Of a stretch of DNA of 64,000 nt, positions 129 through 56,700 are shown in pieces. Source of the DNA: Macrostomum lignano (Eukaryota); NCBI GenBank assembly GCA_002269645.1, contig NIVC01000345.1:77485-141484 (forward strand), given 5' to 3'. How positions within the stretch are numbered: the stretch's first letter is position 1; each line of letters starts with the position of its first letter. The translations under genes were made by a program, and so were the position numbers. Under the pieces are notes generated by a model. That model did not search any database, had not been told where the DNA came from, and saw nothing but the letters and a program-made list of their open reading frames with translations.

Positions 129-3100
129 ACAAGGCACAGAAACTACAGTGCTAAGCCGAGCGCACACGTCGGTAAGCAAAAAGTCTGTCAGCTTTCTGGA
201 ACAAACTGAGGACAATAGTCAGCATCAACTGGCGTCGAGTGAGGCTGTGGAAGCTGAACCGGAACCAGAAGCACAGGTAAGATGTTCTTGAGTTGTGCTT
301 ATCTTTGTCTCAAATCAGTGTTCAAGTAAAGACTAGACTACTGTTAGATAGTGTCACCTGTTGGACAAGATATAGTGACACCTGTTACGAGTACACAGGG
401 GATAGTGTCACACCTGTTAGACAGGAGATAGTGTCATACCTGTTAGACAGGGGATAGTGTCACACCTGTTAGACACGGGATAGTGTCACACCTGTTAGAC
501 AGGGGATGGTCTCACACCTGTTAGACAGGGGATAGTGTCACACCTGTTAGACAGGGGATAGTGTCACACCTGTTAGACAGGGGATAGTGTCACACCTGTT
601 AGACAGGGGATGGTCTCACACCTGTTAGACAGGGGATAGTGTCACACCTGTTAGACAGGGATAGTCTCAACTGTCAGGATCAGGTGCAACCTGTAGCATG
701 AGCAACACTCCTGGTCAATAAAATTTCCAGCCCGAGCCGTCAAAACCCTCTGGTCGTCCAATCGTGAAGAAGACAAAGCAGCCGCAGCAGCCGCAGCAGC
801 AGAAAAGAGCCGCCGCGGCAGCCGAGAAGAGAGCCAAGCAACGCCAGCAGAAGCAGCAGCGTCAGCCACCGCCGCCACCCCCTGCAGCGGCCGCTGAGCC
901 GGAGAAAGACGCAGATGCAGATGCAGAAGCAGCTGCGGCTGAGCAGGCGGAGCTGGACCGCCTGACAGCTGAAGCCGAAGCTGCCGCTGCCGCCGCTGCC
1001 GCCGCAACCGAAGCCGAGGACAGCCTACTGGAGCTTCTAGAAGGTGACGAAAGTTTGCTTGACGAAGAAGAACTCGCCGAGCTGAAGGCGGCACTCGCAG
1101 CCGAAGACCTTGAAGACGAGGACGAAGACGAGGACGAAGGCGACGACAGCGAGGAGGCGCAGCTGCGGCGACGTCAGCGCCGGGAGGAGCGCGAACGGCG
1201 GCGCAAAGCTGAGCAGGAGTTGCGCAAGGCGGAGCTCCGACAGCGCAAGGAGGCCGCCCTGCGACGTCGCGAGGCGGAAGCTCAACGAGAGCGGGAGGAG
1301 TCCGACCGGCTGCAGGACATCGAGGCGGCCCGCCGGGCTCGGGAGGAGCAGCGGCGGCAGCGAGAGGCGGAGATCGCGGCCGCTGAGGCTGCTGCTGCGG
1401 CGGCTGAGCGCGAGGCTGCCAGGGCGGCCGCGGAAGCTGCAGCTCGAGAGGCGGCAGAGGCAGCAGCCGCGGCCGACGCTGAACGACGCCGCGAGCTGGA
1501 GGAGCGGGCCCGAGAGCTGGAGCTGCTGGCCCAGCAGGCTGCCGAGGCCGAACGGCTGAGAGTCGCCGAGGCTGAGCGACTCAGATTGGAGGCGGAGGCA
1601 GCTGCTGAAGCTGCCGCGGCCGCTCTGGCCGAGCAGCAAGCGGCGGAGGCGGCAGCAGCCGAGGCGGCGAGGATTCGAGCGGCTGAAGCGGCCGAGGCGG
1701 CGGCGGAGGCGGAGCGGCTTCGAAGAGCGGCTGAGCAGCGGCTTGAAGAGGCTCGGCGACGCCGGGCAGCCAATGCGGAGCTGCGACGCGAGAGCACCCA
1801 GCTGGGCTGGGCGCAGAGCATCTCGAGGCCGTTTGTGTTCTCCTACTTCACCAACTGGCCCAGGGAGCTGTGGGAGACGTGAGTGGCGACAGATGTTTCT
1901 TTCTTGTAAAACGAGGACATGAATAGGTCGTGCAGAAGAATCTGCCACACAATCGGCTTACAGGAGTCGTTTTAAAAGTTTAAAGTCAATTTCAGAGATG
2001 TCTAAATGGCTGGTTGAAGACCCTAAGAGTGCCGAATCAAGATGGGTTGTCTCGCTGCATGTCTAGTGGTCGAATGGTCTGACGAAATTATTAACTGTAG
2101 TTAGATCTGGTCCAGGCTCCATTCCGATGGAAAACCCAAGGGACGTACATCCGCTCGTAATTGTCTATAGGGCTCCAAGTTTCGATTTTTTTCATGGAGT
2201 TAAGATAGATGTATCATCGACAATCTTAAGAAAATTTGCTAAGTTGCTTGCTAAAATTCGCTCTGCTCCGGAAGCATTTGCTTAAACCTTGTAAATCAAC
2301 TAATGACAAAGCACATAATTACGTCCTTTTGGAGGTCCAGAAGGTGAGATTTTGACAGTTTAGTGCAATTGAAGGTGATTTATTTTCGGTTCGTGAGGAT
2401 GAGGTTAAAACTGTAGCCTACGCTTTGTGATTCCGTTTTTGCTTGATCAGCAAAGCTATAGAGAAATTGTCAACAGGGAGTCGCCTGGTGTCACCCGTTG
2501 AAGAGTGCCGACGGCATCGGGGTGATGATGAATGCTTGAATTGACAGACTTTTTGAGCATACATAGCAGTTGGCGCTTGCCCATTGTCGAAGCTTGATCC
2601 GATACATCTGCTAGATAACTTCGCAATAGGGTGTCCATATAGTCACCTCGAAAGAAATTTTCTGGGGGGGGGAATTCCCGGTATTTCTACTGTTACAAAG
2701 GTAATGGTCGATTTCTTCCGAAGTAGTGTTCTATATTGAAGTAATAAATTATCTCAATAACAATTGTTTCGTGTCAGAAAATGTGACTCAACTTTTTAAA
2801 AATCTATCGTAAGCTAGAATGGTTATGCTCTTTTTAAAAGCACCATCTTCCATATAAAAAAACTTATTTCTGAGTACTTTTAGAACGATAAAGACTTCTA
2901 ACATTCACAAAAACATTTTGCTGGTCTCAAACTACGACTAATTATTGGAACAAATAAATAAACGACATGCGATTATTGTATTTAGTGGAGAGCAGCAGTT
3001 TCAGTTTCCAACCACAGACGAGTCTCGGTAAAGTTTAGCGCCTTATTTCTTTGGAAAAATATCTTTGGTTTGTTTTATTTGCAACAGCTAACTGGGCTGT

Positions 3101-3580
3101 CACGAATTTAAATAAAAAATAAGATTTCTCACAACACCGGTCTTTTTGTCTTGTATACCATACCCTCTGATCGCGACTCTTAAACGAAGTCACAAAACCC
3201 AACAATTGAAATTCGTGCCATAGAACTGGAAAGTCTCAAAAAACTCTATTCGAATATATTTTTTGTTAAAACTGTGTCGAAATTGCGTGTTTTAACTAAC
3301 TGCAGGAAAACGCCGTACAATATAACAGTTCTTGAATAGGTGCTTTCTTGAAATTCCAATGGTTCTATAATGTCTTACAATATACATAGAGTACAATTAC
3401 TAATTTATCTCTCTCTTAATCTTGTTCCACAGACCTATCGGTGGCGGTGTCAACAGGCAGAAGGTGTACAAATTTCCCAAGAAGTCGGCAGAGTCTGCAA
3501 CTGCGCCGGTAGTCGAAGAGGCCACCGGGGCCAATTCACAAGGAGCCGATGCTGTTGGCAGCCAGCCAAGCCCAGGCTAA
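129..3580 (+). CDS. 3' part of an Ala/Glu/Arg-rich coiled-coil protein gene, C-terminal motif resembling KIAA2012/DUF4670-type proteins; 5' exons lie outside the window
   Basis: Exons 129-276 (tttttcag|...cag|gtaaga), 731-1878 (tttccag|ccc...ac|gtgagt) and 3433-3580 (ttccacag|a...taa) join in frame (phases 0 and 2). The middle exon is the 372-aa ORF-track product with (E/A/R)-rich coiled coil and QSISRPFVFSYF. The last exon reads PIGGGVNRQKVYKFPKK...SPG*. AATAAA at 3698-3703. The family assignment is from recalled motif similarity only. Confidence 0.7.
347..670. repeat. 26-bp minisatellite (TAGTGTCACACCTGTTAGACAGGGGA)n, gene 1 intron
   Basis: Period 26 (481, 507, 533). Confidence 0.92.
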
Positions 3581-4877
3581 TTACCTGACTGACACGCAGG
3601 GTTTAAACGTTCCGCTTTGTTTGTGTTTAATTTTTACTGTGTAAAGCATCAAACTACCGCGGTAACCATGGACAACTAAAGTAGATCAGGACAATCTAAT
3701 AAAGTGGGTATGTTTTCACTGCAAAATTAATTCGCGCGAAGTAAGTTTACAGATTTTTTTGAATCTATAGCTATTACCATAAAATCAAGAAAAAAATCTG
3801 TTACTAATTCAGTTTTAATTGGAACTTTAGTCGATGTAATCTCTGTTCAACTGGTAGCATTTCTAGAATTAAAGAAATAGTTTAACTTGTGGTTCGTAAA
3901 GTTTAAATTCGAAAATTACGAGTATACAGCCCAGATAATGGTGCCCTATGTTACAGCTTACGTGTACATGCGATGATGTACAACTGACGGACGGTTACCT
4001 GCACGAACCACCTGATTTATATGCCACTATATATTACTTTTCTTATTGATTTATTGTCTTATTAATCCTCTAATAGTAAAAATCTAACTTACTAATCTTT
4101 TTTAAAACACTCACTGCTTTGTCATTTAATAAAAAATATACGATCATGCACTTAACTATAATTTATATTAACGGTTAGACCGCAACTCGTCCGCCTGAGA
4201 ATTGCGGCCTGTTCCATGGTATCTAATTTAGTTTTGAAGTCAAGAAAGCAAAGATTAAAATTACCTTCACAAAGTTTTTTAATTGCCCTTTTAGGATATA
4301 TTCTCCACAAATGGACATGTGCATATGTAATTAACAGCATCATTGCAATAATGACACAAGACTCCGCTTGCATCACATAAATTCTATCTACTTGAGTTCA
4401 TGTACCATAAATGATGTGCCGTCTACACATTATATGGTACATGTAATTGATTATCTGAAGATCTGCTTTTTTACTTTATATTTTGATGAACTCTCAGCAG
4501 ATCAACACAGGGAAAGAGTTATAACGAATACAGCCTATGTGCAGTTTGTTTTTTATTGTTTTGATCATTAAATAATAAATTTGCATTATGCACAGAAAAT
4601 ATTATGTGTACATTCATACATGTTATATACAAATGTACAAATATGTTATTTGATTAACCTGTGTACCGGCCCAGTGTTGTACAGGAAATCATGTATAAGA
4701 AGTCTCCGCCGATTTGTTATTCAGTTCTTTGTTGTCTGAGGAGACGGGATCTGATATTTAGATCCCTTTTTTGTTCACCGAGGACAATTAAGGTACGATA
4801 AAACATACATGTAACACGTACATTTATAATGTATGCAGCTTGGGATGCATTATGCGTGTCTGGAAATTATGTAAATA

Positions 4878-5022
4878 ATAAACGCCGTTTAATTCACATT
4901 CTGTGGTTAGAATGTCCGAGGCTGCGTTTAATGGTCTCGAGGCGAGCGTAGCGAGCCGAGGACCATTGATTGTAGCCGAGGATATTCTAACCATAGACTA
5001 TGATGAATTAAACGGCGTTTAT
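4878..5022. mobile_element. Short foldback (palindromic) element
   Basis: Perfect 19-bp inverted repeat ATAAACGCCGTTTAATTCA (4878-4896 / 5004-5022), an inner imperfect 20-bp IR and a central GCGAGCGTAGCGAGC. Confidence 0.65.
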
Positions 5023-6773
5023 CATATATTAAATTCGATTGCTCCTGATTTCGAGGAGATTATATGATATAATATCCTAGTTTTGTTAAAAATTACCACA
5101 GACAACACATTCCCGGCTCTGAATAGTACAATTTTTAACGATTAAATAAGCAATCGTATTTTATATATTTTTATAACAAAACATTATATCAAAAACATGT
5201 CTTTGAAATGTGCAAGAAAGCCATGCAAATCGGTTCAGTTTGTTCTGAAAGTGACTGCTGAAAGAATCAGCATTTCTCAGCTTCGGTAATGGGCCGTATG
5301 CAGAAAGCTCTGTCTAGGGTAGTCCGGTCTTGAAAAGCTAGTCTGGACTTGGATTTAGTATGCAGAAACACAAAGTTAGACTGGTCTACTATAGACAGAA
5401 CAAAGGTAGCTAGACCAAAGTCCGGACTACTACTACTACTACTACTAAATAAGTAATATGGCGCCTCAGCCATTGAACAGGCTCTAATTACGCCACTAGG
5501 AATGAATTAGGATCCATGTTGGGAGTGTACTAATGTACACTAGGTTTCTAAGCTAGGCTAAAAGAGGACTGTGGCCATCAAGCCGAGCAGGCGACACCAG
5601 TCGGGCTGAGGGCGCGGGCCCTACCCCCTACCGTCGGGGCGTCGCACCTACTCCAAACTCAAATCAAAACCTCCTCGGGGCTAGAGGGGGTTGAGTGAAC
5701 CAATCAGGGAAGCCCGTGCCTTCTCCTGGGTTAGAATTAGCCAAAAAACCGGTCATATGACCGCCCCCACGGCCGTGGCGACCCGAAGGAACCTCCCCAC
5801 CAACTAAACCCCGGGTACTCTTGCCAGACAGTCTCTCATCTTTGAAGCGGCGGAGGGCTATTCGCCAGGACTGTTTCACCATTTGCTTCGCCAACCCGCC
5901 ATTTTAATAGTGGCCGTGCCAACGGCCCCGTCCTGCTCAGACTCAGTCCTGGTTTTGGCACACTCCAGCTTTAATAGAATCGCTGGTCTGTTCACCAGAG
6001 GACACTCCGAGGGAGACCGTCAGAGCATCAACTGGAACAGGTATAGGCCTGCCTTCCTATACAGCTACCCACAGCCACAGCCCCCTTCCTGATCTACCCT
6101 CTAACCCAGCCTACTAACTCATTACAAGCTTTCAGCCAGGCAGAGACAAGTGTCACAGGAATACTGCGGTTCGGCGTCTCTATGCGAGACAAAACCAACT
6201 ACCCAAGTCCGGACTAGCTAGTCTGGACTAGGCTTTATACATATGGCGCGGCCCAATGTATTTTACAAGTTTTACAAAGAGTCTGTAGACTCTTTTGGAT
6301 ACACATTATTAAAGGTAAACAAACCACTTAAAACAGCAAACTATAAATCAAATCTTTCAATTTCAACTGAATAAGTCGCTTATAGTTTTACTATTTTTTT
6401 CCTTTACGATCATATTTGATTTACTGATGTAACTATTTTTATTATCGCTTTTAACTTTTTTGTCTTGCCTTTATCATCGACGCGCGGCGCGTTTACTGAA
6501 ACATCCCTGATTATTTGTGTTTTGTTGTTTCGCCTATTGTTTGTAACTTTGTACTGGGGCAAGGCCAGCTATCCCTAGCTGGCCAACTCACTAACTAACT
6601 AAGCCGAAAAAAATTGCTGTTTGTCTAGACAGATATATAGGTTTGAGTAATTAGTTGTTGGCTTGTTTTTAGTCGTGAAGTTTTTACTACTGTGGTTCTG
6701 GCGTGTGTGTAGATCATTTCTTTTTTACACTAATTTGTTTCTTAATTCTAAGCCTGCATTATTATATAAAATG

Positions 6774-7044
6774 CAGGGGCGTAGCCAGGATTTTTTTTTG
6801 GGGGTATCGGTTAGCTGTTATCAGAAAGCAAGGGCTTGAGATCCACTTATCCCCTTAATGTATTTCTAGTGCATAATACATATAATTACTCTATTTGTTT
6901 GTTAATTGTTATTCTTTCGATTTGGATACCTTTCTCTTCCTTAGTTAATGGTCACAATTGCAACTGAAAAAAGGAAAAAAAATGTTGCTTTGGAAATTTG
7001 GGGGTATCGGCCGATATACCGATACCCCCCTCGCTACGCCCCTG
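6774..7044. mobile_element. hAT-type MITE (271 bp)
   Basis: 12-bp TIR CAGGGGCGTAGC / GCTACGCCCCTG, 8-bp TSD ATAAAATG at 6766-6773 and 7045-7052, subterminal GGGGTATCGG motifs. CAG termini plus an 8-bp TSD fit the hAT superfamily. Confidence 0.85.
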
Positions 7045-8213
7045 ATAAAATGTTTTTGAACAACACATTGTACTCGTACATCGCATAAAATTGTATCAAG
7101 ATTAAAGAGGCAGTAAAAAGTTGTAAAAAGTATGCAGAATAGGCCCATGCCATGCCATGCCATCGACATCGATAGTATAATTTTTATAAGTTTTATGCCT
7201 ACAGCAAAATAATATTTTGGAATAGAAGGCATATTTTAAACTGGAAATAGACGTTTTTATCATTTTTTATTTGTTTTAGGTCTACATAATAAGAAACTTT
7301 AATTATATATAATAAACAAACTTAATAAAAGGTTAATTATAAATTATAATATGCCGAATTATTTATTAACTATTGATTAAGTCCAGGAGGGCCTCCATTA
7401 TAATGTCTCATTTCAGAATAATGGAAATAAAAAATAATATGTTTTTATTCCAAAAATTAGATTAACTTTTGTTGGATCTATATATGTTAATTAATATAGC
7501 AGTCAGAGATTGCATTGAGTCTTCTAAACAAACTTGTTTTACTATAATAACTTAAGACATTGTATTGTAATAATAGGAAAGTCACCATATCTATTATATT
7601 ATGTGTACCAACTAACTTTTGCCAACCTGGCTAAAATCTAAAATTTATACTAGAAATTTCTAGTGTATATTGCATGATCTCTAATGTAGGTTAGAGACAT
7701 AACAAATTAACAAACAACATATTTTTATTTAAGTCTATTGTAAAAACTTATTATATCCAATCTGTTATATTTATATTTATTTAATGCTATATGCATGATA
7801 TAAACCAAGTTCTTAGATCACCAAGGCTTTATAAGCAATTTTAATAATTTATTTATTATTGCAATCATTATATTAAAGAAAATATTAACATATCTAACTT
7901 AATAACATATTATTGACAATTTTTGACAAAAGTTTAGACAATTTTAGAGATATTATATAAAATAAGAAATATAATAATAAAAGTATAAGACCCATTTGTG
8001 TATTTTTTAGTTAAAGATTAGTAATTAAGCCTTTAAGTGATATTAGTAAAATAAGTTTTTAGTTTTTAAAATAAATTTTATTAAAGCATCAACAGCTAAT
8101 ATTAGCCAAAGATAAGGGTAACAAGGCTAGTAGTTTAGCACATTTGCTACTAAGTTAAGCTAGTAGCAAATGAGTTGGTTAGGTTAGTATATAGCTAAAT
8201 GGGCTACTTGTGC

Positions 8214-8520
8214 TGTCGCGACTTTCCTAGTCATTTCTTAGTTCACCTTCATTTGTCTCTGTTTACTCCGTTTTCTCTCTCTCTGTCTAGCTCAATCTTG
8301 TTATTCTTATCTCTCTCTCCCTTGCTGCGTTCTGATTGGCTCTCCTTTCTCGCCTCTTTCCTCAGTCGCGCACTCCACCCCCTCTCTTTATTATTCTGGG
8401 CTCAGCCCCCCAAAGTTAAATGTTCTATAAATATATCGGTTTGGGCCCTGCGCCCACTTACTGCTCCTTCAATTTAACTCCAATTAAATAGTTTGTAGTT
8501 TAGTTAGTATTTTTTTTACA
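8214..8520 (+). repeat. 5' LTR
   Basis: TGTCGCGAC...TACA; TATAAATA at 8426-8433. The ORF track gives an identical peptide from both LTR copies. Confidence 0.93.
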
Positions 8521-8624
8521 TGGCGCCCAATGTAAAATAATTAAGTCAATTCAGTAAGGCTGGCAAAGGCCATGCCATCGTCATAGTCGTAACCCTCCAC
8601 CAGTCATCTCGTCATCCCGTCTGT

Positions 8625-9250
8625 CGGCCTCATCGCTTCGTTTGTCGGCCTCATCGCTTCGTCTGTCGGCCTCATCGCTTCGTCTGTCGGCCTCATCGCT
8701 TCGTCTGTCGGCCTCATCGCTTCGTCTGCCGGGGTGCGTCCTGCGGTGTCCTCGGTCTCTCTCGTCTCAAATTCTCTGCCGGGGCGCCTCAGGGCTCGCC
8801 TGCCGGATCGTCTCTTCGCTCATCGTCTGCCGGGGGTGCGTCCTGCGGTGTCCTCGGTCTCTCTCGGTTCAGATTCTCTGCCGGGGCGCCGCGGGGCTCG
8901 CCTGCCGGATCGTCTCTTCGCTCGCCTTCCGGATCGTCTCTTCGCTCGTCGTCTGCCGGGGGTGCGTCCTGCGGTGTCCTCGGTCTCTCTCGGTTTCCAA
9001 TTCTCTGCCGGGGCGCCGCGGGGCTCGCCTGCCGGATCGTCTCTTCGCTCGCCTTCCGGATCGTCTCTTCGCTCATCGTCTGCCGGGGGTGCGTCCTGCG
9101 GTGTCCTCGGTCTCTCTCGGTTCAAATTCTCGGCCGGGGCGCCTCGGGGCTCGCCTGCCGGATCGTCTCTTTGCTCATCGCCTGCCGGATCGCCTCAGGG
9201 CTCGCCTGCCGGATCGTCTCTTCGCTCATCGCCTGCCAGATCGCCTCGTT
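8625..9250. repeat. GC-rich internal repeats of the LTR element
   Basis: About 4-5 copies of 21-bp TTCGTCTGTCGGCCTCATCGC, then four 102-127 bp units (GTGCGTCCTGCGG anchors at 8734, 8836, 8962, 9089). Confidence 0.88.
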
Positions 9251-9607
9251 AATTCGTCATTCAATTTTTTCTTTCACCATGTAGTCACAATGTAAAAAAT
9301 TAAATTAATTTTTAGGGGGGAGGGCGGATATATTCAGGGGAGGGAGGGTATATTCAGTCTTTTCAGTCTTCTCATTGGTTCAAAAACTACTCAATAAAAA
9401 TCTAAGTTTAAAATTCGGTCTAAATATTTGCATTCGCTCTACTGTTTTTGTATTCAAATTCTTAGTCATTATGTATTTTTCAAATCGTTTTATACACCAT
9501 TTATTGTGAATGTGTTTTTCAATTTAATTCGACCTAATTTTAACTCATTAATTTCAATTGGTAATGGTACTCGAAAATTCAAAAAATGTTCCATTTTTTG
9601 GGGGGAG

Positions 9608-10594: not shown

Positions 10595-10749
10595 AAAGTA
10601 AAACTGCAGGCTTACAACTAAATACAATAGTTATGATATAGTTATGATATATGCACTTGTTTCCAAGTCTCCTTTATTGATTGAAACTCTCTCCCTAAAT
10701 CTCTGTCAGCACATATTCCAGCAGTCTTAGACAAGCCTTAACTTGTTCA

Positions 10750-33177: not shown

Positions 33178-33178
33178 A

Positions 33179-33223
<45 letters not shown>

Positions 33224-41414: not shown

Positions 41415-41534
41415 TTTGAAATGTGCGATCGATAAGTTTTTTTTCTGGCGTTGCTGACTTTATGATTTGATTTGCTTTTAGCATGGTGCGTGGATTAAAC
41501 TTTTTTGAAGTATTGAATTGTGCAGAGTCTAGCC

Positions 41535-47529: not shown

Positions 47530-48110
47530 ATCTCTGCCTACTCTCCTCTCTCCTCTGCCTACTCTCCTCTCTCCTCTGCTTACTCTCTTCTGTCCCCTCC
47601 CTACTCTCCGCTGTCCCCTCCCTACTCTCCTCTGTCCTCTGCCTACTCTCCTCTCTCCTCTGCTTACTCTCCTCTGTCCCCTCCCTACTCTCCTCTGTCC
47701 TCTGCCTACTCTCCTCTGTCCTCTGCCTACTCTCCTCTCTCCTCTGCCTACTCTCCTCTGTCCCCTCCCTACTCTCCGCTGTCCCCTCCCTACTCTCCTC
47801 TGTCCTCTGCCTACTCTCCTCTCTCCTCTGCTTACTCTCCTCTGTCCCCTCCCTACTCTCCTCTGTCCTCTGCCTACTCTCATCTGTCCTCTGCCTACTC
47901 TCCTCTCTCCTCTGCCTACTCTCCTCTGTCCCCTCCCCACTCCCCGCTGTCCCCTCCCTACTCTCCTCTGTCCCCTCCCTACTCTCCACTGTCCCCTCCC
48001 TACTCTCCTCTGTCCCCTCCCTACTCTCCGCTGTCCTCTGCCTACTCTCCTCTGTCCTCTGCCTACTCTCATCTGTCCTCTCCCTACTCTCCTCCGTCCT
48101 CTCCCTACTC
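47530..48110. repeat. 21-bp minisatellite (CTACTCTCCTCTGTCCTCTGC / ...CCCCTCC)n
   Basis: [14 protein letters not shown] periodicity. Confidence 0.93.
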
Positions 48111-49221
48111 TTCTCTCTCGTGTCCTAACTCTCCTCTCCTCTGCCCTATCTCCTCTCTCCTCTCTCCTCTGCCTACTCTCATCTCATCTCTCCTCCCTTC
48201 TCTCTTCCCTCTCCGCTCTCCCCTCTCCTTTCACCCCACACCTCTCTCCTCTCATCTCTCCTCCCTTCTCTCCCCTCTATCTTTTCGTCTCGTCTCTTAT
48301 TCCCTATCACATTTTCACCTGTTTACACCTGTTATTCAAAATGACCTGGAACATTGCCAAACAATATTTGACTAATATTTCAGTTATAAAAGCTCGTGTG
48401 CTATGATTTGGTACATTAACTTTAACCATATTTTTATTGGCAAGGCCGCACAATCATTTAAACAAGCGATGCAGTATACCTACAGAGTAATAAAACCTTT
48501 AACCTTAATAATATCGTTGGGCTTATATTTTGATATATTTTATTGCTATATTTAGCGGTTTTAAGGAACTTCGGGTTTCCAGGGGATTTCGTGTTTCCAG
48601 GGAAACTGCACGCGGGTCTAAGAATAGTCGGAACAACAAATAAATATAATCAAGTATTTTTGAATTAAACAATATTTGCTTTGTTAAGATGCGAGTTTTA
48701 AAAAGCCTGCATAAAAACATTCTAGATTTTTAAGAATCTTTGAGTAAAATTTCACTGAAGCCTTTAAAAGCTTATCTAGCTTAGCAATGCTTGAGCTCTT
48801 TATTCCCTGTGCTTCAACTTGTTTCAATATCAGCTCAACTATATCAAGTCTATTTAAAAGTATATTTTGCAAACCATTGAGCAATCGATCGGTGACAATG
48901 CCCTGCTCAGTACGTACGGAGTTTATTGATTGATTTGACCCCCAGAACAGGTGGCACCAAATGCATTTTTTTAAACGCGTGGGTGCTTTAAAGCTATTAT
49001 ACTAGTATTTTCATTTTTTGCTTTAGTTTCAGCATTGGATTGACATTTTATTAAAGTAGAACTACTAATAGTAGCTTTAATGGACATTACCTGCATATGC
49101 ATCCCGAATTTATAGTGCTTACTAATTCTATACTCAAAATTGTAAAGTATTAAGGCGCTTTTAAAGGCGTAGAGTCCTAGAAAATTGTTTACATCTAATC
49201 GGAAATACATCCGTACATCAA

Positions 49222-49605
49222 TCAACCAATCAAAGACACATTATCTCCAATCAAAGACACATTATCCTCAATCAAAGACACATTATCCCCAATCAAATAC
49301 ACATTATCCCCAATCAAATACACATTATCCCCAATCAAATACACATTATCCCCAATCAAATACACGTAATTCTCAATCAAAGACACATTATCCCCAATCG
49401 AGGACGCATTATCACCAATCAAAGACACATTATTCCCAATCAAAGACACATAATCCTCAATCAAAGACACATAATTCTCAATCAAAGACACATTATCCCC
49501 AATCGAGGACGCATTATCACCAATCAAAGACACATTATTCCCAATCAAAGACACATAATCCTCAATCAAAGACACATCCCCTAATTGAAGACACATTATC
49601 TCTCA
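49222..49605. repeat. 21-bp minisatellite (AATCAAAGACACATTATCCCC)n
   Basis: QSKTHYP periodicity. Confidence 0.92.
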
Positions 49606-50039
49606 TCCAAGACACACACACTATTCTGTCTGTTCCTCAGTCAAGATGTTGAGAAGCCCTCTTCAAAATGACTGCAGGCGCACAAGGCTGTTATCAGACA
49701 TCTTCCTCTCTATAATGTTGAAACGTGTAAATTAATTATTAAAGTGGACAAAGTGAAGTATAGGAGCGAAAAAGAGATGGGATTCTGTTTGACTGTTAGA
49801 GATGTTGATAGGCTTCTTGAGGGGGCGAACGCTCTGGCTGGGATCACGTGATGGAAGCCATCATCAATTCTAAGAGCCTGAAGCTCTATGTGAGTGAGTT
49901 ATTCTGCTATTTCTTGAGTTATTTCTAAATCTGCATGTCCGATAATTATTGCCTCGAATCCCTTTAATCTCTTGCTGAGACTATCGCGTTTAGAAACTAC
50001 TTCTGCCTATCATGGCGGCTTCGGATATGCCCCAACTCT

Positions 50040-50260
50040 GTTGGTCTATCTCTCTCTATCTCTATCTCTCTCCCTTGGTCTATCTCTCTTGGTCTATCTC
50101 TCTTGGTCTATCTCTCTTGGTATATCTCTCTCCCTTGGCCTCTCTCTCTCTCTCTTGGTATATCTCTCTTGGTCTATCTCTCTTGGTCTATCTCTCTTGG
50201 TCTATCTCTCTTGGTCTATCTCTCTTGGTCTATCTCTCTTGGTCTATCTTTCTCTTGCTT
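50040..50260. repeat. 14-bp repeat (GGTCTATCTCTCTT)n
   Basis: Period 14 (50171, 50185). Confidence 0.9.
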
Positions 50261-50599
50261 GTCTCTATCTATGTATTATCTATTTCTCTTTGTCTGTCTC
50301 TCTCTTAGTCTATCTCAGCTGTGTCTATCTGGGTGTATCTCTTTTTCCAATAATTTTTACTTCATTTATTTTTCCATCTACCTACCAGTATGTCTCACTG
50401 TTGTTTACTAATTCCAATTTCACCTGTTAGAAAATATGTAGCAATCAGACTAATAGCCATGTTAGAAAAAGATTGCAAGTAGGGTAATGACTTTTGGGAT
50501 ATCTGCATGAGGATTACGGGATCTAGAATCTAACTTTATGCTTGTTATTCCATTAATGGGCAAATGGGTGTAGTCAGTAGGTTACTTCGTATGCAAGCT

Positions 50600-51090
50600 T
50601 TCTTCATTCATTCATTCAGTTCAAGTATGCGCGCCATGGATGATAAAGCAGTCCTAACCAAGTCTCTGCATTTAGTGATCCATGGTGCACCGGTTGGAGA
50701 TCTCGGTACAGCCAGAGATCGAGAGATAGCCAAGGCATAGAATTCTAGATAACTAACTGGAAGAGAAGGCTCACTTTTTCGTGGGTCGAAAGCGGACACA
50801 ACCGGGCCGAGTCATTTTAGCTTGTTTAAACGGTCTGCCTTTCCCTATCTCAGTCCCACTGACTAAGCGGGGTTTGAGGTGGGCAGGCTCTTCACAAGGC
50901 TTGGAAGTTTTTTGTCCTAGACAGGAGAAAAACCCTTCGGAGGGGAAGGAAGATCCCCGGTAAATCAGTGCTGTTTCTTTGTCTGCGATGCACACGGGGT
51001 AACAGGCCCCCCACTTGAAAGCTGAACGCATGCACATTGGGTGTACATTTGCTCGCATGCTTTTGAGGATGCCTTCTCCACTTCACCCTA
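50600..51090 (-). mobile_element. Probable retroelement 3' end with (TGAA)n tail
   Basis: Minus strand ends ...TGAACTGAATGAATGAATGAA. Segment 50736-50812 recurs inverted at 52592-52658. Confidence 0.5.
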
Positions 51091-51379: not shown

Positions 51380-52270
51380 TTCACACAACGTCACAAGATT
51401 CTTGGTAAGCGCAGGAGAAACAGCGACACTCTGAATAAGGAATGATGGTGTGCCGGTGTGCCCTCCATACAACAACAAAATGCGCTGTCAGCCATTCCAG
51501 CGAGTCATGGTCAAGAGAGACAAGGACAACGTCACACGTTTCAGGGCCTGGGCGCGAACCGCCGGCCGCACCGCCGGCAGAGTCCGGGGCGCCGGCATTA
51601 GCCGGCAAGAAGTCGACGAAATACAGACTGCGCGCCTGTCCCCGCCGGTAGGGTGCCTGCAGCGACAGCAGCAGCACTTCCTGCACCGGCTGTGGACTAT
51701 AGGACTCGGCTCGGATGATGTGGCCTGCCAGCTGGAGTCGTGGACGGCGCAAAAGTTTGCTGGGAAGGGACAGGCCAGTGCGGCGATAGAGCCCGCATTG
51801 GTGACGTGCTCGCAGCCGATCTTAAAGACGGCGCGCAGCAGGCCAGCGTGCGCCGCATTGACCTGCTGTTCGAGCGAATCCGTCAGTGTCCAGGTCTCGG
51901 TGTTGTACAACAGGACATCGCCTTGAACAACGCCGCCCTCTAGCGGCAGGCAGGGCCTCGGACTGCAGGACAGCCCTCACGAAACGGAAGGCAACCCAAG
52001 CAAGTCCACGGCGACGTGCTGGGTCCTCTGGAACATCAAGCACCATGGTCTGCAGACCGCCGAGGCAGACGAACTGCTGACAGTGCGGAAGCTTCGGCAC
52101 CTGCCTGTCAGCGTCTCGGTGTTCGAAGCACGACGGTCTTCTGCGTGTTGACCCCCAGGCCGACGCTCGCAGCAACGCTCACAAGCTGGTCCAGCTGGCG
52201 CTGGGCGCGTTCGACGGTCGGCAGGAAGAGACTCGACGAAATCGTCGAGTTTGACCGCGATGTATCAGGT
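51380..52270 (-). mobile_element. 5'-truncated, frameshifted RTE-type non-LTR retrotransposon (RT C-terminal half)
   Basis: Fragments read AQRQLDQLVSVAASVGLGVNTQKTV, QFVCLGG, RRRGLAWVAF, YNTETWTL and RLQLAGHIIR, the typical order of RTE-clade motifs. Confidence 0.82.
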
Positions 52271-53783
52271 GAAATCGATCGCCGGAAAGTACCGCGATGC
52301 AGTGGCGATGGTACCGCGATGTATCTTCTTCATAGATTAGATTAAGCAACTAATTTATGTTCATACTGTGATTTTTTACTGATCCCATCCCATGTGTTTA
52401 CTTTGCGGCTTTGCAAAAATATGAGTTTTGTTAAGATATGTCACAAATACCTTTAGAAACTCTTAATAAGCACTGACTTGTTAATTAAAAAAAATAAACT
52501 TAAAGAATTAATTATACTCTTAATAACAGCAGCCAATTATTAGTGAAAACATTAGTGTTGAATAAGGCAGCAAGAAAACATGCAGGCTCCCACTCGGCCC
52601 GGTTGTGTCCGCCCCCCAAAAAAGCCTTCGCTTCCAGTAAGTTATCTAGAATTCTATGGCCAAGGCCATGAAAATCGCTCTATCTCCCAAATCCCATTCA
52701 CCCAACCCCAACTCGCAAAGCAGAAGTCAGTTTCTCGTCTCTCCCTCTCTCCCCGGGGGTCCCTGGATGGGGAACGCGATCCCTGTGCACGCGACGAGGA
52801 GTTCTAGAATAAATATATCATTAAATTATGGATCTATGAATTATGGATCCACCATCCAGAAAGAATTGTTTAAATATAGGAGTCAAAATAAACGCTAGAT
52901 TCAATTGGGAATGGTGTATTTGTCACAGTAATTCGGTTAGCCAGTGGTATCCTTGTCGTATTCGGTCGTATTTTACAATAATTGATAGTTATTCATGCTA
53001 TTCCAGATCACTGATCCTAGTTGTCCTTGACCGGGTCAACGTACATTTTTTCGCCCTTCCTTCTCTTTTCCCTTCCACCCTGTCTCTCCCCTTCATGCCT
53101 GCAGTGTCCACGCAAAGGCTGTTCAACCCCAACCCTTCCCTAATCCTATTCCCCTTTCCCACAATGTACTTAGCCAAACCATTTCTTCCTTTCTCCCTCT
53201 CCAGGCAGTTCCCAAAAAGCAATGCTGCTGCTCAGAGTCATATAACTGAACCAAGCTGGCCCTGCTGCAGACTGTAGTGTTTGAGGGGGGCTTTAGTATG
53301 CCTGAGCGACAGGGTGGCAGAGAGGAGAGGGAGACACGGAGACAAAAACGGAACGGGGGGTTGATGAAGTGCAGGGGAGGGGGGTAGAAGTGGTCCCTGG
53401 GGTTGCCCACACTGTACAAGCTAGGCAGCTTGGCCAATTTCACCACGCTCTTCTCTTCCCTCTCTCTCGCTCTGTCGCTCTCCGCCGTTCGTTCCAGTAA
53501 ACCCTTTACCGCAAACCCCTTCGTTTCTCCTCTCCTCTCCTCTCCTCCTCGCTCTCTCGCTGTCTTTTCCCCCTCCGTCTGCAGTCGCCCACCATATTAA
53601 TCACCCACCTGCGAGCCCCAACCCCCAATCCCAATCTCTCCCCTCTAACAGACAGAAATTCATTCATTTCTCATTGCTCTCCACTCGCCCTTGTCATCTA
53701 AGCTCTTTCTATTCCGTTAAACAAGTTAATCTGTCGTGTCATCCAAAAAAGTCACAATTACAAGCAAAACCTTACCGACAATT

Positions 53784-56700
53784 ATGTCTCTACTCGTTGA
53801 TGAGAACAGTTTCGGAGAGACGTCCACCGATCCGGACGAACCACAGACGCGAAACACCTTCAACGCAGCTTCGTGCACCGTCAAGTACGCCACTGTCTAC
53901 TTGGACAGGGCCGAGGTCTGTCGGATCCTCCGACCGAAGGTGCACGCTGGTGAAAATGAAATCCTTGTTCGAGGACTGACGCCCGCTATTGATAAGGATT
54001 CCATCAGGTGAGGAAGCACTTTAAAAGCATTTGTACCGATTGGCTTTGGTCTTTTTGGCACCTGCTTCATAAATTCATCATATCCATCAACGTTTCAAAT
54101 GGTCCATCAATATTTCAAATGGTTCATCAATATTTAAAATGATCCATCAACGTTTCAAATGGTCCATCAATGTTTCAAATGGTCCATCAACGTTTCAAAT
54201 AGTTCCATCAATATTTCAAATGGTTCATCAATATTTAAAATGGTCCATCAACGTTTCAAATAGTTCCATCAATATTTCAAATGGTTCATCAATATTTAAA
54301 ATGGTCCATCAACGTTTCAAATAGTTCCATCAATATTTCAAATGGTTCATCAATATTTAAAATGGTCCATCAACGTTTCAAATGGTCCATCAATATTTCA
54401 AATGGTCCATCAATGCTTCAAATGGTCCATGAATGTTTCAAATGGTCCATCAATGCTTCAAATGGTCCATCAATGCTTCAAATGGTCCATCAATGCTTCA
54501 AATGGTCCATCAATGTTTCAAATGGTCCATAAATGTTTCAAATGGTCCATCAATGTTTCGAATGGTCCATCAATGTTTGAAAAAATCCATCAACATTTAA
54601 TGGTCTACTGTGCCTAAATCAATGCCTCCAAAACCTCCCATTCTTAGCCGTTCAGTGAAATATTTCAAAACATATCCTTCAGTCCCATATTAAAATCCTG
54701 CAGTGACACAAACCGTCTCAGTGGCACATAAGCTGTTTCCATTATGATCCTTAAGTGACACCACCTCTTGCTTTGATCCTTCGTAACAAGGTAAAAAAGC
54801 AACTGTCTGAGAATATGACTTTTCAGTGACGCACTCAAACAGTGACTCGTGCAAAAACAATCCACACCAACTTCCCCTCCCCAACCAGAGTGGAAGTCAA
54901 AGGCCCCGCCACCATCGCCGACGTCTCATTTGTTGCTAAGTACAATCGCGACGACGAAGAGAAGAAGGCGGCTCTCCGCGCCCAGACTCAGGCTTCGCTG
55001 GCTGCCGAGCAGCGCGCTTTAGAGAGCCTCGCCAATCGACAGGTTCGGCTGTTGAAACAGCGCGACGTACTAAACAGCTACGCCGACACGCTGATCAAGA
55101 AGCCCGAGCCAGCCAGTGGAAGCGGCGCCGCCGGCCCCTCGGCCTCCGGGGCCGCCGCTGATGCCACCGAGAGTCAGGTGAATGGTTGGGGTAACGTGAT
55201 CATCAGGACTAAATTTGTCACATGGTCTGGACAAACTTGTCTCATGGTTGGGACAAAAAGGTTTCATAGTCCATATACTAAAAGTGGCTCATCGTCGGGA
55301 CTAAAAGTGTGTCGTGGTTGGGACTAAAAGTGTCTCATGGTTGGGACTGAAACTGTCTCATAGTCAAGACTAAAAGTGGCTCATCGTCGGGACTAAAAGT
55401 GTCTCACGTTTGGGACTGAAAGCGTCTCATAGTCAAGACTAAAAGTGTCTCATCGTCGGGACTAAAAGTGTCTCACGGTTGGGACTGAAAGTGTCTCACG
55501 GTTGGGACTGAAAGTGTCTCATAGTCAAGACTAAAAGTGTCTCATCGTCGGGACTAAAAGTGTCTCACGGTTGGGACTGAAAGTGTCTCATAGTCAAGAC
55601 TAAAAGTGTCTCATCGTCGGGACTAAAATTGTCTCATCGTCGAGACTAAAGGTGCCTCATCGTTGGGATAGACAGTGTCTCTTAGACATCTCTATGTCCT
55701 AGTAGCGGTTTCTTATCATTCGGAAAAATTTTGCAAAGATGCTTATTGCTAAAAAAGCCATTCCTTGCAGGACAACGCCTCCAAGTCAACCGGTGGCAAC
55801 AACAACTTGCACGCCGCAATCGACGCCTTCGACCCGAAGCACATGGACACGCTGAACAGCTTCTTTGATCTGTACGAGAAGCAAGCCGGAAAGTTGGACG
55901 ACGATCTGCAGGAGACCAAAGTGAAAATTCAAGCTAAAGAGGAGGCCATTAAAGTGCTCGAACGTCAGCTGCGCGACATTGAAGCTCGTTATGCTGAACT
56001 GCAGAGCCGGTAAGTCACTTTGTATAAATGTTTCAAGTCTTTAAATGCGTATACTCAATAATTAAAAGTATCTGGCAACAATAGAAATCCTGTCTGTTTT
56101 TTCAAGTGCATTTCTTTCAAAGTTTTTTATCATTCAATGCATAAAATGAAACTTTAGCTATGAAACGTTCCTTTCCGGTGCCTTATTCGTGAATTCCCTT
56201 CACCGGTGTAGGGTTCCATCAGTGTGTATATACTTCAATTGAACTTTCACGACCAAATGTACTTAGATATTTGTAAATACTTATTAGGAAGCCACGTGTC
56301 CTGCACGGTAATAGCTTTGCGGTAAATAAATTCCATGCAGACACAATAGCAATTCAGGACACCAGACAGCCAGTTGTTAAACAAAAAACACGGGCCATTC
56401 CGAACCAAGAAGTACATCTCGCATTCCAGTTTTCTGGATTTTCAATATATGCAATTCACTCGCTATACTTGCGCGCTTGGAAGCCACAGCAACGTCCACA
56501 AGAACGCCGACGGTGCCATAAAAAAACTTGTATTTCCATACAGTCATGATAGTTTCCTGCGTGCAGCAGCATCGTGGGAACTCGCGCTCTCCCTCTCTCT
56601 CTCTCTCTGCCCCGTTTCATGAACAGCGTTCGGAACCTCCCCCGAGGGAGACGATGCTGACGAAAGGCTGTGCAAAAAAAGCCAGAGAGAATGAGACAGA

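Follow-up and report, generated by a model that had tools for sequence, protein, structure and literature searches.

The tandem arrays in the window, the whole 64-kb stretch of DNA that we analyzed, have a real and non-random preference for repeat units of 19 to 26 bp. By a combination of TRF and autocorrelation, we detected 31 distinct arrays between approximately positions 343 and 55681 of this one window, and 24 of the 31 have a base period in that band, with a mode of 21 bp and a second peak at 24 bp. What had been read as unrelated arrays separated by spacers proves to be a single CAPS/CADPS gene, with the arrays as introns and the spacers as exons, together with its neighborhood. Shared cores, one array split in two, and two arrays carried by an LTR element show that the likeness in period is partly inherited, so that not all of it is convergent. 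As to what sets the length of the unit, we infer a threshold in DNA repair acting together with this partial common ancestry, an account that we regard as quite possible though short of probable.

Distribution of array periods

The base periods are 4, 5, 12, 14 (two arrays), 19, 20 (three), 21 (eight), 22, 23 (two), 24 (five), 25 (three), 26, 29, and 54 bp, so that the pattern is one of a band and a valley: 4 and 5 bp, then 12, 14, and 14 bp, then the 24 arrays at 19 to 26 bp, and finally 29 and 54 bp. The first-pass annotation had placed about 20 of 28 arrays in the band, which is near our census, its counts for 20, 21, 24, and 25 bp being off by one or two; the wide differences in GC content that it described are also seen, the arrays spanning 0.25 to 0.68. 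The clustering is beyond chance. It persists once relatives are merged: the range of 19 to 26 bp takes in 12 of 14 similarity components (P = 7e-7) and 8 of the 10 units that have no detectable relative (P = 1.6e-4). Twelve arrays have periods of 20 to 22 bp and 10 have periods of 23 to 26 bp, and there is an excess of 21 and 24 over 22 to 23 bp, with multiples of three accounting for 12 of 23 in-band arrays (P = 0.005, post hoc). Because the periods are so far from a smooth decay, a length-dependent process is needed, and to this extent the earlier proposal of some length-setting mechanism stands. One specific version, in which slippage events or patches have a set size of approximately 21 bp, is at odds with the higher-order repeats within arrays, which measure 41 to 45, 52, 76, 84, 92, 105, 126, and 284 bp and so represent many amplification step sizes.

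Arrays with at least 10 copies number 25 in the 64 kb, or approximately 390 per Mb, and no arrays are present in the final 8 kb of the window or between 0.7 and 8.2 kb. At their edges, the arrays degrade into degenerate units of drifting length. In the 37.6 kb of unique sequence, we found 13 strict two-copy duplications of 8 to 9 bp, 8 of 10 to 11 bp, 4 of 12 to 14 bp, and 1 of 17 bp, where approximately 2 in total were expected, and none of 19 bp or more. Since all of these duplications are of 17 bp or less, the preference for 19 to 26 bp is invisible at the two-copy stage.

Arrays in the introns of a CAPS/CADPS-like gene

Exon-intron reading, tblastn maps, and Pfam place a CAPS/CADPS-like gene (neurosecretion), closest to Macrostomum lignano, on the forward strand at 10750-41411. 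Exons 1 to 5 lie at 10750-11382, 12471-12910, 21196-21276, 21811-22056, and ~26713-26984; exons 6 to 10 at ~28171-28366, 30783-31431, 31982-32147, 32252-32375, and 33558-33665; and exons 11 to 15 at 36929-37085, 37654-38102, 39075-39341, 40058-40252, and 41229-41411. Thirteen of the 14 mapped introns contain at least one array, arrays make up 67% of the intron sequence, and the only array-free intron is 104 bp long. This gene context, in which the arrays are introns of one gene, had been overlooked in the first-pass annotation.

A 23-bp array (11422-12415; arrays are given without strand) whose 3' third has a 45-bp higher-order repeat occupies 994 of the 1,088 bp of intron 1. Intron 2 has four arrays. 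A 24-bp array there is broken in phase, with a CC overlap, by a 2.28-kb insertion (14347-16630); its left half (12976-14346) and right half (16631-18156), identical in unit, are one array split by the insertion, in which unique sequence, 484 bp on one side and 404 bp on the other, flanks the insertion's own 22-bp array (14831-16226; unit CTGAGAAATGGAAGCTCAGAGG). The 12-bp array TGTCTTAGTGTC (19714-20792) is related to the 25-bp arrays at 46.1 to 46.9 kb (46122-46872) and has the reverse-complement orientation. In intron 3, a 54-bp array (21336-21758) has GGCG(G/C)CAACTTCA in common with the 21-bp array at 22078-22688, which has a GGCGCCAA core and starts 21 nt past the intron 4 donor. Intron 4, with three arrays, also houses a pyrimidine-rich 14-bp (2 x 7) array (23230-24617) and a 20-bp array with the GGCGCCAA core (25129-26640; 75 copies, 93% identity). 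Intron 5 holds a 21-bp array (27229-27954), a relative of the 23-bp array at 55199; intron 6 a 19-bp array (28632-29196) with a 76-bp higher-order repeat and a 25-bp array with a TTGGCGCCAA core (30081-30689) and 35- to 38-bp variants at its 5' side; and intron 7 a 20-bp array with a TGGCGCCAAA core (31494-31915) that takes up 422 of 550 bp. The first GT of a (GTCT)n microsatellite array (32376-33263) is the intron 9 donor. Introns 10 to 14 contain, in order, an AT-rich 21-bp array of alternating 20- and 21-bp units (35019-36634), an (ACTCT)n array (37112-37618) filling 507 of 568 bp, a 21-bp array with a GACACTA core (38201-39049) that ends 25 nt short of the acceptor, a 29-bp array (39350-40018) that starts 8 nt past the donor and fills 669 of 716 bp, and a 24-bp array that is a diverged 2 x 12 dimer (40306-41036).

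Across the gene, arrays start 0 to 65 nt past the donor in nine introns and end 25 to 72 nt before the acceptor in seven. No units span an exon boundary in these introns, and a donor is touched only by the (GTCT)n array. Donor-like GTRAG words in the intronic arrays number 0 on the sense strand and 31 on the antisense strand, an asymmetry that comes from three arrays only. The non-array remainder of five single-array introns is 47 to 128 bp (as small as 47, 61, and 94 bp), and an M. lignano CAPS paralogue has matching intron positions that are array free, and at three positions its introns measure approximately 86, 192, and 236 bp. The small remainders, the 104-bp array-free intron, and the short introns of the array-free paralogue suggest that the ancestral introns were short (~100 bp), with approximately 50 to 300 bp of non-array sequence remaining in each, and that each has been swollen to 0.5 to 8 kb by at least one locally evolving minisatellite. 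That the arrays evolved in situ is indicated by the unique spacers, the lack of TIRs around the arrays, and the degenerate, drifting edges.

Arrays outside the CAPS/CADPS gene

Upstream of gene 1, a 26-bp array with the unit ACAGGGGATAGTGTCACACCTGTTAG (343-690) has degenerate 5' edge units of approximately 17, 24, and 32 bp, so that its earlier start, approximately 347, was close to the edge units seen from approximately 343. A young non-autonomous LTR retroelement lies on the forward strand at 8214-9914, recognized by its LTRs, TSD, PBS, and PPT. The 307-bp LTRs (8214-8520 and 9608-9914) run from TG to CA and are 99.7% identical, the TSD is TGTGC, the PBS TGGCGCCCAATG is at 8521, and the PPT GGGGGGGAG lies ahead of the 3' LTR. 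The interior, without coding capacity, consists mostly of arrays, one of 24/27 bp (8794-9247) with 51- and 126-bp higher-order repeats and one of 21 bp (8618-8732; 5.5 copies), in confirmation of the LTR element and its 21-bp interior repeat noted previously. The element is like TRIM/LARD-like non-autonomous LTR retroelements (short LTRs, TSD, PBS, PPT, no ORFs, array interior), but it houses just two of the 31 arrays; the rest lie outside any LTR or TIR setting.

Past the final mapped CAPS exon lie a 21-bp array (41526-42433) and a 24-bp array (43527-45637) with a 284-bp higher-order repeat, the latter a relative of the 26-bp array at 343-690. A foldback or MITE-like element (46219-46640; 158-nt arms, 97% complementary; TSD ~AAACA) sits between two related 25-bp arrays of the GACACTAAGAC family, at 46122-46218 on its left and, in degenerate form, at 46644-46872 on its right. 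Beyond it are a pyrimidine-rich 21-bp array (47532-48282; 84-bp higher-order repeat), a second 21-bp array (49226-49616; 105-bp higher-order repeat), and a pyrimidine-rich 14-bp array (50041-50341). No exons were found in the 41.5- to 50.3-kb stretch. A DUF4140/DUF4139 gene on the forward strand (53736-62540; exons include ~53736-54011, 54836-55176, 57456-57737, and 62301-62540) has arrays in its first two introns and none in later introns; these are a 20-bp array (54083-54593) that starts 72 nt past the donor and a 23-bp array (55199-55681) that starts ~21 nt past the donor and has a 92-bp higher-order repeat.

Relatedness among arrays

The description of the arrays as unrelated holds for ten units without a detectable relative, and in over 85% of the pairs the two units resemble each other no more than shuffled units do. 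It fails for the 18 of 28 distinct units with one or more significant relatives: alignment at p <= 0.01 is reached by 17 unit pairs (3.8 expected), and words of at least 9 nt are common to 11 array pairs (1.2 expected). With these relatives, the split array, and the LTR-borne 21- and 24-bp arrays, the further claim that sequence-specific spread would not explain the periods was too strong. Two core motifs recur among the units. A group of five arrays with a GGCGCC core occupies consecutive introns in a 10-kb span, and its units are the five best matches to the LTR-end/PBS/leader junction of the element at 8214-9914 (best match 16/20, p ~0.008, uncorrected). Periods within a related group vary widely (12 to 26 and 20 to 54 bp), mostly still in the band, and core positions are conserved no better than the remainder of the unit. 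The flanks of related arrays have no sequence in common, the spacers being unique; nor did we find TIR or TSD signatures around the arrays or isolated copies of the cores.

Origin of the unit length

From the mechanisms listed in the first-pass annotation, a threshold in a repair process is the option that we favor. The base period would be set at the founding tandem duplication, an event that would become steeply rarer with length, and later amplification in register would keep the period and generate higher-order repeats of 2 to 12 units; the higher-order repeats of 41 to 284 bp point to in-register amplification of this kind. Growth would depend on a one-unit slippage loop that exceeds the capacity of MutS-beta mismatch repair, ~13 to 16 nt in yeast, and on a unit that supplies ~15 to 25 bp of homology for out-of-register re-annealing in replication, SDSA, or sister-chromatid exchange. 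Only units of at least ~16 to 20 bp would evade mismatch repair and have the homology to expand, and the product of a falling birth rate and a rising establishment rate would be a narrow band above the threshold and a valley at 7 to 18 bp. The true microsatellites of 4 to 5 bp would form a separate class with very frequent slippage, and descent from older arrays would strengthen the clustering. In the 1997 work of Sia et al., the exact boundary reportedly lies at 13 versus 16 to 20 bp.

The two-copy duplication spectrum indicates that units of at least 19 bp are nearly never met at the two-copy stage and that short duplications stay two-copy. Large slipped loops evade MutS-beta repair (PMC8145212), and a passage of PMC3618361, citing Sia et al. 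1997, states that a minisatellite with a 20-bp unit was not destabilized by MMR mutants in dividing yeast. Units of 16 to 18 bp are permitted by a limit of 13 to 16 nt, yet none occur in the window; the valley has exceptions, with arrays of 12- and 14-bp units attaining 1.1 to 1.4 kb; and the excess of 21 and 24 over 22 to 23 bp is not predicted by the threshold model. An absence of two-copy duplications of at least 19 bp is also expected if new arrays begin as several units copied out of older ones. MMR loop limits are near universal, but three arthropods have no comparable multi-family peak in published period tables, so the threshold view must additionally assume that births or expansions are more frequent in this lineage or at this locus. 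The array-free last 8 kb, the array-free 0.7- to 8.2-kb segment, and the array-free M. lignano paralogue point to a locus-specific factor beyond the model.

It is also conceivable, though we think it rather unlikely, that the period is simply inherited: a few units from existing arrays would seed new ones, by ectopic templated repair or aboard array-carrying mobile elements, and then diverge under concerted evolution, with indels altering length slowly, so that the band would mirror a few ancestral unit lengths. The excess of aligned pairs and shared words, the clustered GGCGCC-core arrays and their match to the LTR junction, the 21- and 24-bp arrays aboard an element with nearly identical LTRs, and the lack of long two-copy duplications all fit such a history, as does the unexceptional conservation of core positions, which is expected from ancestry and not from constraint. 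However, a constraint is needed to keep the varied periods of related groups mostly in the band, eight of the ten relative-less units fall there too, most unit pairs are no closer than shuffled units, and the unique flanks, without TIR or TSD, leave no visible vehicle for most arrays. A constraint of another kind, which we judge improbable, would be a ceiling imposed by splicing: if the introns were originally ~60 to 150 bp, selection might cap the unit because only 20 to 40 bp between the 5' splice-site and branch-point/3' regions could be duplicated without taking splice signals along. The placement of arrays close to donors and acceptors, the small non-array remainders, the absence of sense-strand GTRAG words, and the lack of units across exon boundaries agree with this, but the GTRAG asymmetry has its three-array basis, the band is also found in the long multi-array introns 2 and 4, upstream of gene 1, inside the LTR element, and in the exon-less 41.5 to 50.3 kb, and the upper limit would be explained but not the lower.

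Alternatively, a unit two helical turns long, or one built from two one-turn sub-units, might be favored for phasing protein sites, DNA bending, or nucleosome contacts. The mode at 21 bp and the 12 arrays at 20 to 22 bp would suit such phasing, as would palindromic sites in some units (e.g., TTGGCGCCAA and TGACGTCA) and a half-unit sub-periodicity whose overall level exceeds chance (mean z = 1.0, P = 0.003) and which five arrays (19, 21, 24, 24, and 25 bp) display strongly. Yet the clearest half-units are of 12 bp, not 10.5 bp, cores are not preferentially conserved within arrays, and arrays so wholly unlike in sequence and GC content make a common binding protein implausible. With no arrays at the harmonics of 10 to 11, 31 to 32, 41 to 43, or 52 to 53 bp and ten out of helical phase at 23 to 26 bp, the helical phasing put forward earlier is contradicted, and we consider a structural or functional role of this kind decidedly improbable. 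The siRNA/miRNA size of the units is a coincidence that had suggested small-RNA-templated copying; small RNAs might template or guide copying, or the arrays might be sources of small RNAs, and the oppositely oriented relatives at 19714-20792 and 46122-46872 could pair as RNA if co-transcribed. This suggestion found no support: no Rfam family was found in the window, hairpin potential is not general (nine units with z < -1, four with z > 1), there are no inverted array pairs within 6 kb, and the units reach 26 bp, with the second peak at 24 bp. No animal mechanism is known to us in which genomic tandem copies are made from small-RNA templates, and a small-RNA link seems to us very unlikely indeed.

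Comparison with known systems

The nematode "satellite explosion" (holocentric hosts; Subirana and Messeguer 2013, PMC3634726) likewise comprises numerous independent arrays, each with 10 or more copies and most with units below 50 bp; they are scattered in gene-rich DNA, are built on short core motifs that recur in combination with other bases, lack interspecies sequence conservation, and have species-specific, non-smooth periods whose peaks "correspond to related sequences." The density in the window, ~390 per Mb (25 arrays), is approximately tenfold that in nematodes (7 to 47 per Mb), and, in this flatworm host, the cores have no isolated copies, the peak persists among relative-less units, and the arrays track the introns of a single gene. 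The minisatellites or "mirages" of amphioxus (Adh3 and globin genes; PMC3087553) are also lodged in the introns of ordinary genes, and those of Adh3 have units of 10 to 72 bp, concerted evolution, and apparently undisturbed splicing. Mirage units cross exon-intron boundaries, whereas here none do and only (GTCT)n touches a donor; for amphioxus, there is no known report of a narrow period band, and here hardly any intron of the gene is spared. The classical minisatellites of vertebrates and yeast (VNTRs, 15- to 100-bp units) share the head-to-tail arrangement, variant repeats, higher-order structure, origin by local duplication, and expansion by slippage or recombination, and in dividing yeast mismatch repair does not stabilize repeats with units of this size. 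Human hypervariable minisatellites are GC rich, with a chi-like core and subtelomeric clusters, whereas the present arrays range in GC content from 25 to 68%, are built on different cores, and saturate the body of a gene.

Among arthropods, period maxima lie at 10, 12, 17, and 24 bp in Daphnia pulex, in which tandem-repeat density peaks in introns, and at 21 to 24 bp in Drosophila (Mayer, Leese and Tollrian 2010, PMC3152781). These maxima rise only slightly above a decaying curve and often stem from a single repeat type, and units of 19 to 26 bp make up 7 to 22% of the density for units of at least 7 or at least 12 bp (PMC3152781), compared with 86% here.

Unit lengths of the tandem arrays cluster between 19 and 26 bp

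With Tandem Repeats Finder (TRF) run over the whole window and autocorrelation as an independent check, we found 31 distinct arrays, from about 343 to 55681, with base periods of 4, 5, 12, 14, 14, 19, 20 (three arrays), 21 (eight), 22, 23 (two), 24 (five), 25 (three), 26, 29 and 54 bp. The band from 19 to 26 bp holds 24 of the 31 (median, 21; interquartile range, 20.75-24), so that the periods separate into 4 and 5, then 12, 14 and 14, then the 24 in-band arrays, and finally 29 and 54, with a valley at 7-18 bp. The first-pass annotation had placed about 20 of 28 arrays in this band and the first array near position 347; the tally was essentially right, and so was the start, degenerate edge units beginning at about 343. 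The wide spread of base composition that it described was also borne out, the GC content of the arrays running from 0.25 to 0.68. By TRF and autocorrelation, 29 of the arrays are head-to-tail repeats of 12- to 54-bp units in 3.8 to 96 copies, that is, minisatellites (VNTRs). Identity among the copies inside one array is 72-97%, and marks of concerted evolution are present in the form of variant repeats, higher-order repeats of 41-284 bp and degenerate edge units.

As chance baselines for the band, we used either 7-22%, from the density of tandem repeats whose units measure at least 7 or at least 12 bp in three arthropod genomes (Mayer, Leese and Tollrian 2010, PMC3152781), or the 20% given by a flat distribution over 10-50 bp. 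Under every baseline, P was below 1e-12 for the 24 in-band arrays out of 28. The clustering persisted when similar arrays were counted as one component (12 of 14 components fell in the band, P = 7e-7) and among units without a detectable relative (8 of 10, P = 1.6e-4). We concluded that the clustering of unit lengths in the 19- to 26-bp band is real for this one 64-kb window, a single haplotype. The in-band periods lean towards 21 and 24 bp at the expense of 22-23 bp: 12 of 23 are multiples of three (P = 0.005 in a post hoc test against 25%), even though the arrays lie in introns.

Arrays account for 38% of the window and for 53% of the stretch from 11.4 to 55.7 kb, and 25 arrays with at least 10 copies, flanked by unique sequence, occur in the 64 kb. 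No long arrays were found in positions 670-8200 and 55682-64000 (16 kb, including the later introns of the DUF4139 gene), whereas 53-67% of the adjoining CAPS gene body is array. The array load is locus-specific.

Arrays fill the introns of a CAPS gene

Homology searches identified the array-rich gene as CAPS/CADPS (calcium-dependent secretion activator), and tblastn with full-length homologues resolved it into 15 exons on the + strand, from 10750 to 41411. Its N-terminal region is 80% identical to CAPS fragments, and exon-by-exon tblastn gave a Macrostomum lignano protein as the closest full-length homologue, with 70-90% amino-acid identity per exon. Together with the LINE fragment and the dispersed repeat described below, this homology makes it most likely that the window comes from a macrostomid flatworm related to the sequenced M. 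lignano line and distinct from it; our searches turned up no closer sequence, an exact look-up of the exon-1 ORF and a homology search with an array-encoded ORF both giving no match. The M. lignano paralogue carries Pfam C2_CAPS, PH and MUN, and the window gene has N-terminal, C2, PH and MUN regions in this order on one strand. When the first junctions were read, the spacer at 12416-12975 turned out to be a coding exon bounded by canonical splice sites. Two isolated 1-bp frameshifts (12626-12632 and 30842-30848) interrupt exons that are otherwise well conserved; they could possibly mark a decaying gene copy and are most likely indel errors of long-read assembly.

At least one array is present in 13 of the 14 CAPS introns, and arrays occupy 17.9 of the 26.5 intronic kb (67%). 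Intron growth can thus be driven mainly by tandem arrays, not by transposons, which bears on the evolution of intron size. In intron 1 (11383-12470, splitting ...RRQLK/VTQSQL...), one 23-bp array fills 994 of 1,088 bp; five introns with a single array retain only 47-128 bp outside it, and the sole array-free intron is 104 bp long. Arrays start 0-65 nt past the donor in nine introns and end 25-72 nt ahead of the acceptor in seven. All arrays lie inside introns, at least 8 nt from exons, with the sole exception of (GTCT)n: the donor of intron 9 (32376-32377) is the first GT of a (GTCT)225 array, which thereby supplies the transcript with over 200 additional donor-like sites of the form G/GTCTGT. 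In the intronic arrays (11422-41036 and 54083-55681), we counted 31 strong donor-like words (GTRAG) on the antisense strand, all from only three arrays, against 0 on the sense strand; this asymmetry suggests selection against cryptic donors. The DUF4140/DUF4139 gene (53736-62540, + strand) begins at about 53.7 kb, and the last two arrays lie in its first two introns.

In the M. lignano paralogous CAPS locus (L002, NIVC01003397.1), introns occupy the same positions and are essentially without arrays, measuring about 86, 192 and 236 bp at three positions against 2,416, 550 and 972 bp in the window. An orthologue-like M. lignano gene model (P0121, UniRef A0A1I8IMF2) reads through tandem repeats at residues ~790-1100, translating them as SHQNLSQKSS, EEQFQPEPQP, EEPEEPQP and EVHQELRDEQP, with periods of 10, 10, 8 and 11 residues (~30, 30, 24 and 33 bp); this stretch is probably an annotation artefact of stop-free arrays. 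Since the repeats come after the exon ...SSFLPKS, the same exon that precedes the window's 21-bp array at 41526, arrays are present at the corresponding place in M. lignano, with different units. In the CAPS locus of another animal (L001), where no minisatellites were found in 20 kb, exons 1 and 2 are fused into one continuous exon (10001-10831). L002 (8390-9816) has an intron at the intron 1 position, so that this intron is either lineage-specific or was lost in L001. Together, the three comparisons indicate that the arrays were added to short introns already in place and turn over fast. Macrostomum genomes are reported to contain 15% simple and tandem repeats and to have introns averaging 0.6-1.4 kb, and the publications explicitly leave these repeats uncharacterised (PMC5730564; PMC10468722); our search found no paper on the unit lengths of minisatellites in Macrostomum or in any other flatworm. 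Such arrays make these genomes hard to assemble and annotate, the read-through in P0121 being one instance.

Upstream of the CAPS gene, a GC-rich (59-77%) open frame at 764-1882 (+ strand) encodes a low-complexity protein rich in Ala, Glu, Arg and Gln, probably coiled-coil and with no Pfam match; a 26-bp array lies ~100 bp upstream of it.

The arrays are mostly, not entirely, unrelated

Exact words of at least 9 nt were common to 11 unit pairs against 1.2 expected, and cyclic local alignment matched 17 unit pairs at p <= 0.01, where 3.8 were expected, 18 of the 28 distinct units having at least one relative. The first-pass description of the arrays as unrelated is therefore only partly true: they are mostly, not entirely, so. 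Two different cores recur, each limited to a subset of arrays. The core TGGCGCCAA is found in five arrays in consecutive introns (starting at 21336, 22078, 25129, 30081 and 31494, with periods of 54, 21, 20, 25 and 20 bp), and the core GACACTAAG or TAGTGTC in the arrays at 395, 19714, 38201, 43527, 46122, 46644 and 55199, with periods of 12-26 bp. In the window's unique sequence, GGCGCCAA has 0 copies (0.6 expected) and GACACTA has 1 (4.9 expected). The related arrays at 19714-20792 and 46122-46872, 26 kb apart, are in opposite orientation (TGTCTTAGTGTC against GACACTAAGACA) and could pair as RNA if they were in one primary transcript.

We found no common sequence in the flanks of related arrays and no terminal inverted repeats (TIRs) enclosing arrays, which argues against a general vehicle, and the spacers share no homology save one LTR pair and one dispersed repeat. 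A common mobile element as carrier was accordingly rejected for most arrays and holds only for the LTR element at 8214-9914, which carries a 21-bp array, as the first-pass annotation had noted, and a 24/27-bp array. This element is young, its 307-bp direct LTRs being 99.7% identical (TGTCGCG...CTACA, with TG..CA ends), and is flanked on both sides by the target-site duplication (TSD) TGTGC. It has a primer-binding site (PBS), TGGCGCCCAATG, at 8521, which we take to be that of tRNA-Lys, and a polypurine tract, GGGGGGGAG, at 9599-9607. No gag/pol coding capacity was found in it and its interior ORFs are only repeat-derived, which makes it a non-autonomous (TRIM/LARD-like) element. When we compared its LTR-end/PBS/leader junction (8505-8540, CA/TGGCGCCCAATGTAAAAT) with 26 units, the best matches were exactly the five GGCGCC-core units (21336, 22078, 25129, 30081 and 31494), the best of them being the 20-mer at 25129 (16/20, p ~0.008 before correction). 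As a lead, not proof, this sequence match raises the prospect that the five arrays may derive from a retroelement leader. A tRNA-derived origin of the TGGCGCC core was rejected, ARAGORN finding no tRNA-like sequence.

Candidate mechanisms for setting the unit length

What sets minisatellite unit length is an old and little-tested question, on which this one gene provides ~30 independent or semi-independent arrays. The first-pass annotation had considered a length-setting mechanism likely, an interpretation that is partly supported: the clustering itself stood, and most of the specific candidates were not borne out. Helical phasing predicts a harmonic series, yet 0 arrays were found at 10-11, 31-32, 41-43 or 52-53 bp, and next to the 12 arrays at 20-22 bp there are 10 at 23-26 bp. 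Some units consist of two half-units that have diverged from each other (mean z = 1.0, P = 0.003; a strong signal in five arrays), the clearest halves being 12 bp, not 10.5 bp. A fixed patch of ~21 bp conflicts with the higher-order repeats of 41-284 bp. For a small-RNA link, we found neither a known RNA family in the window (Rfam, gathering thresholds) nor inverted array pairs within 6 kb, and hairpin potential was unremarkable: when four tandem units were folded as single-stranded DNA against unit-shuffled controls, z-scores centred on 0 (nine units with z < -1, four with z > 1), with a single clear outlier, the 25-bp array at 30397 (z = -4.2). Hairpin-driven slippage is, by the same scores, not a general property of the units. 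Arrays of constrained protein sites are argued against by wrap-around alignment, in which core positions were conserved at 93.9% and the rest of the unit at 91.3% (P = 0.28); as isolated copies of the cores show no enrichment either, we rejected the cores as constrained binding sites. A length preference at birth was not visible among strict two-copy tandem duplications in the 37.6 kb of unique sequence, which are all 17 bp or shorter: 25 were found at 8-14 bp against ~2 expected, one at 17 bp and none of at least 19 bp. Short duplications are thus born often and stay small, and in-band duplications are nearly never seen at two copies, which implies either quick expansion or multi-unit seeding.

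As the best explanation, we infer that a repair threshold shapes the band. In this model, a founding event would set the base period, which in-register amplification would then freeze. Longer founding duplications would be rarer, and establishment would need a unit long enough to evade MutS-beta loop repair and to pair stably out of register. A falling birth rate multiplied by a rising probability of establishment would concentrate periods in a narrow band just over the threshold, leave 7-18 bp sparsely filled and set microsatellites apart as a class of their own, a predicted pattern that matches the observed one (4, 5; 12, 14, 14; 24 arrays at 19-26; 29, 54). Partial common descent of arrays would add to the clustering, and where introns are very short, unit length may be capped by the room left between splice signals. 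MutS-beta does not repair large slipped loops (PMC8145212), and a passage of PMC3618361 citing Sia et al. 1997 states that a 20-bp-unit minisatellite is not destabilised in mismatch-repair mutants of dividing yeast. Because the host genus includes M. lignano, a laboratory model amenable to transgenesis and RNAi, the repair-threshold idea is directly testable. Sia and colleagues are said to have drawn the loop-repair boundary in 1997 between 1-13 bp and 16-20 bp. The model leaves without account the heavy load at the CAPS locus, which its flanks and the M. lignano paralogue do not share, the absence of 16- to 18-bp units and the preference for 21 and 24 over 22-23 bp. Macrostomids, or this lineage, might own a length-selective array generator that turns short introns into kilobase introns, through an odd repair balance or through a reverse-transcriptase/tRNA-primer route, of which the PBS-like TGGCGCCAA core gives a hint. 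We consider this unlikely; if true, the 19- to 26-bp band with its sub-peaks at 21 and 24 would be a genome-wide signature across hundreds of unrelated families.

Resemblance to known systems

Colonisation of introns by minisatellites is known; what is new here is the unusually sharp band of unit lengths. Of the situations described so far, the 'satellite explosion' in holocentric nematodes (PMC3634726) comes nearest; it shares with the window many dispersed short-unit arrays in genic DNA and recurrent cores. In those nematodes, period distributions are species-specific and non-smooth, with peaks due to related sequences (PMC3634726); in the window, relatedness is also in excess, yet the peak persists among relative-free units. 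The window differs further in an array density ~10 times higher, in the occupation of one gene's introns one by one and in cores that lack isolated copies (in the window only), whereas nematode cores are also frequent as isolated genomic copies. Human-type hypervariable minisatellites have GC-rich units with one chi-like core, in contrast to the two cores and broad GC range found here. Amphioxus intron minisatellites and 'mirages' (PMC3087553) have the intronic setting in common with our arrays, but 'mirage' units span exon-intron boundaries and the window arrays do not, (GTCT)n touching the intron 9 donor.

Insertions and other mobile elements

Two 24-bp arrays with identical 24-mers proved to be one older array, split in phase by a 2.28-kb insertion (14347-16630) that has its own 22-bp array. 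At its edges this insertion shows only a CC overlap, with no recognisable TIR, LTR or long TSD, and part of a unit sits inverted (CTGAGAG/CCTCTCTTCCAT) at the right edge of its 22-bp array. Between two related 25-bp arrays lies a foldback/MITE-like element (46219-46640) with 158-nt arms that are 97% complementary and an apparent AAACA TSD. TIRs of 36 nt (94%) at 50736-50771 and 52623-52658, 1.85 kb apart, surround a LINE fragment (51381-52175, - strand), the C-terminal part of a reverse transcriptase, 5'-truncated and frameshifted, whose best match is a mis-named M. lignano protein (73%). Finally, a dispersed palindromic repeat of foldback type occurs at 34232-34517 and 60288-60940 and, in both orientations, at 3575-4284 of the M. 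lignano contig L002; with 68-79% nucleotide identity, it appears from these matches to be a family common across the genus.
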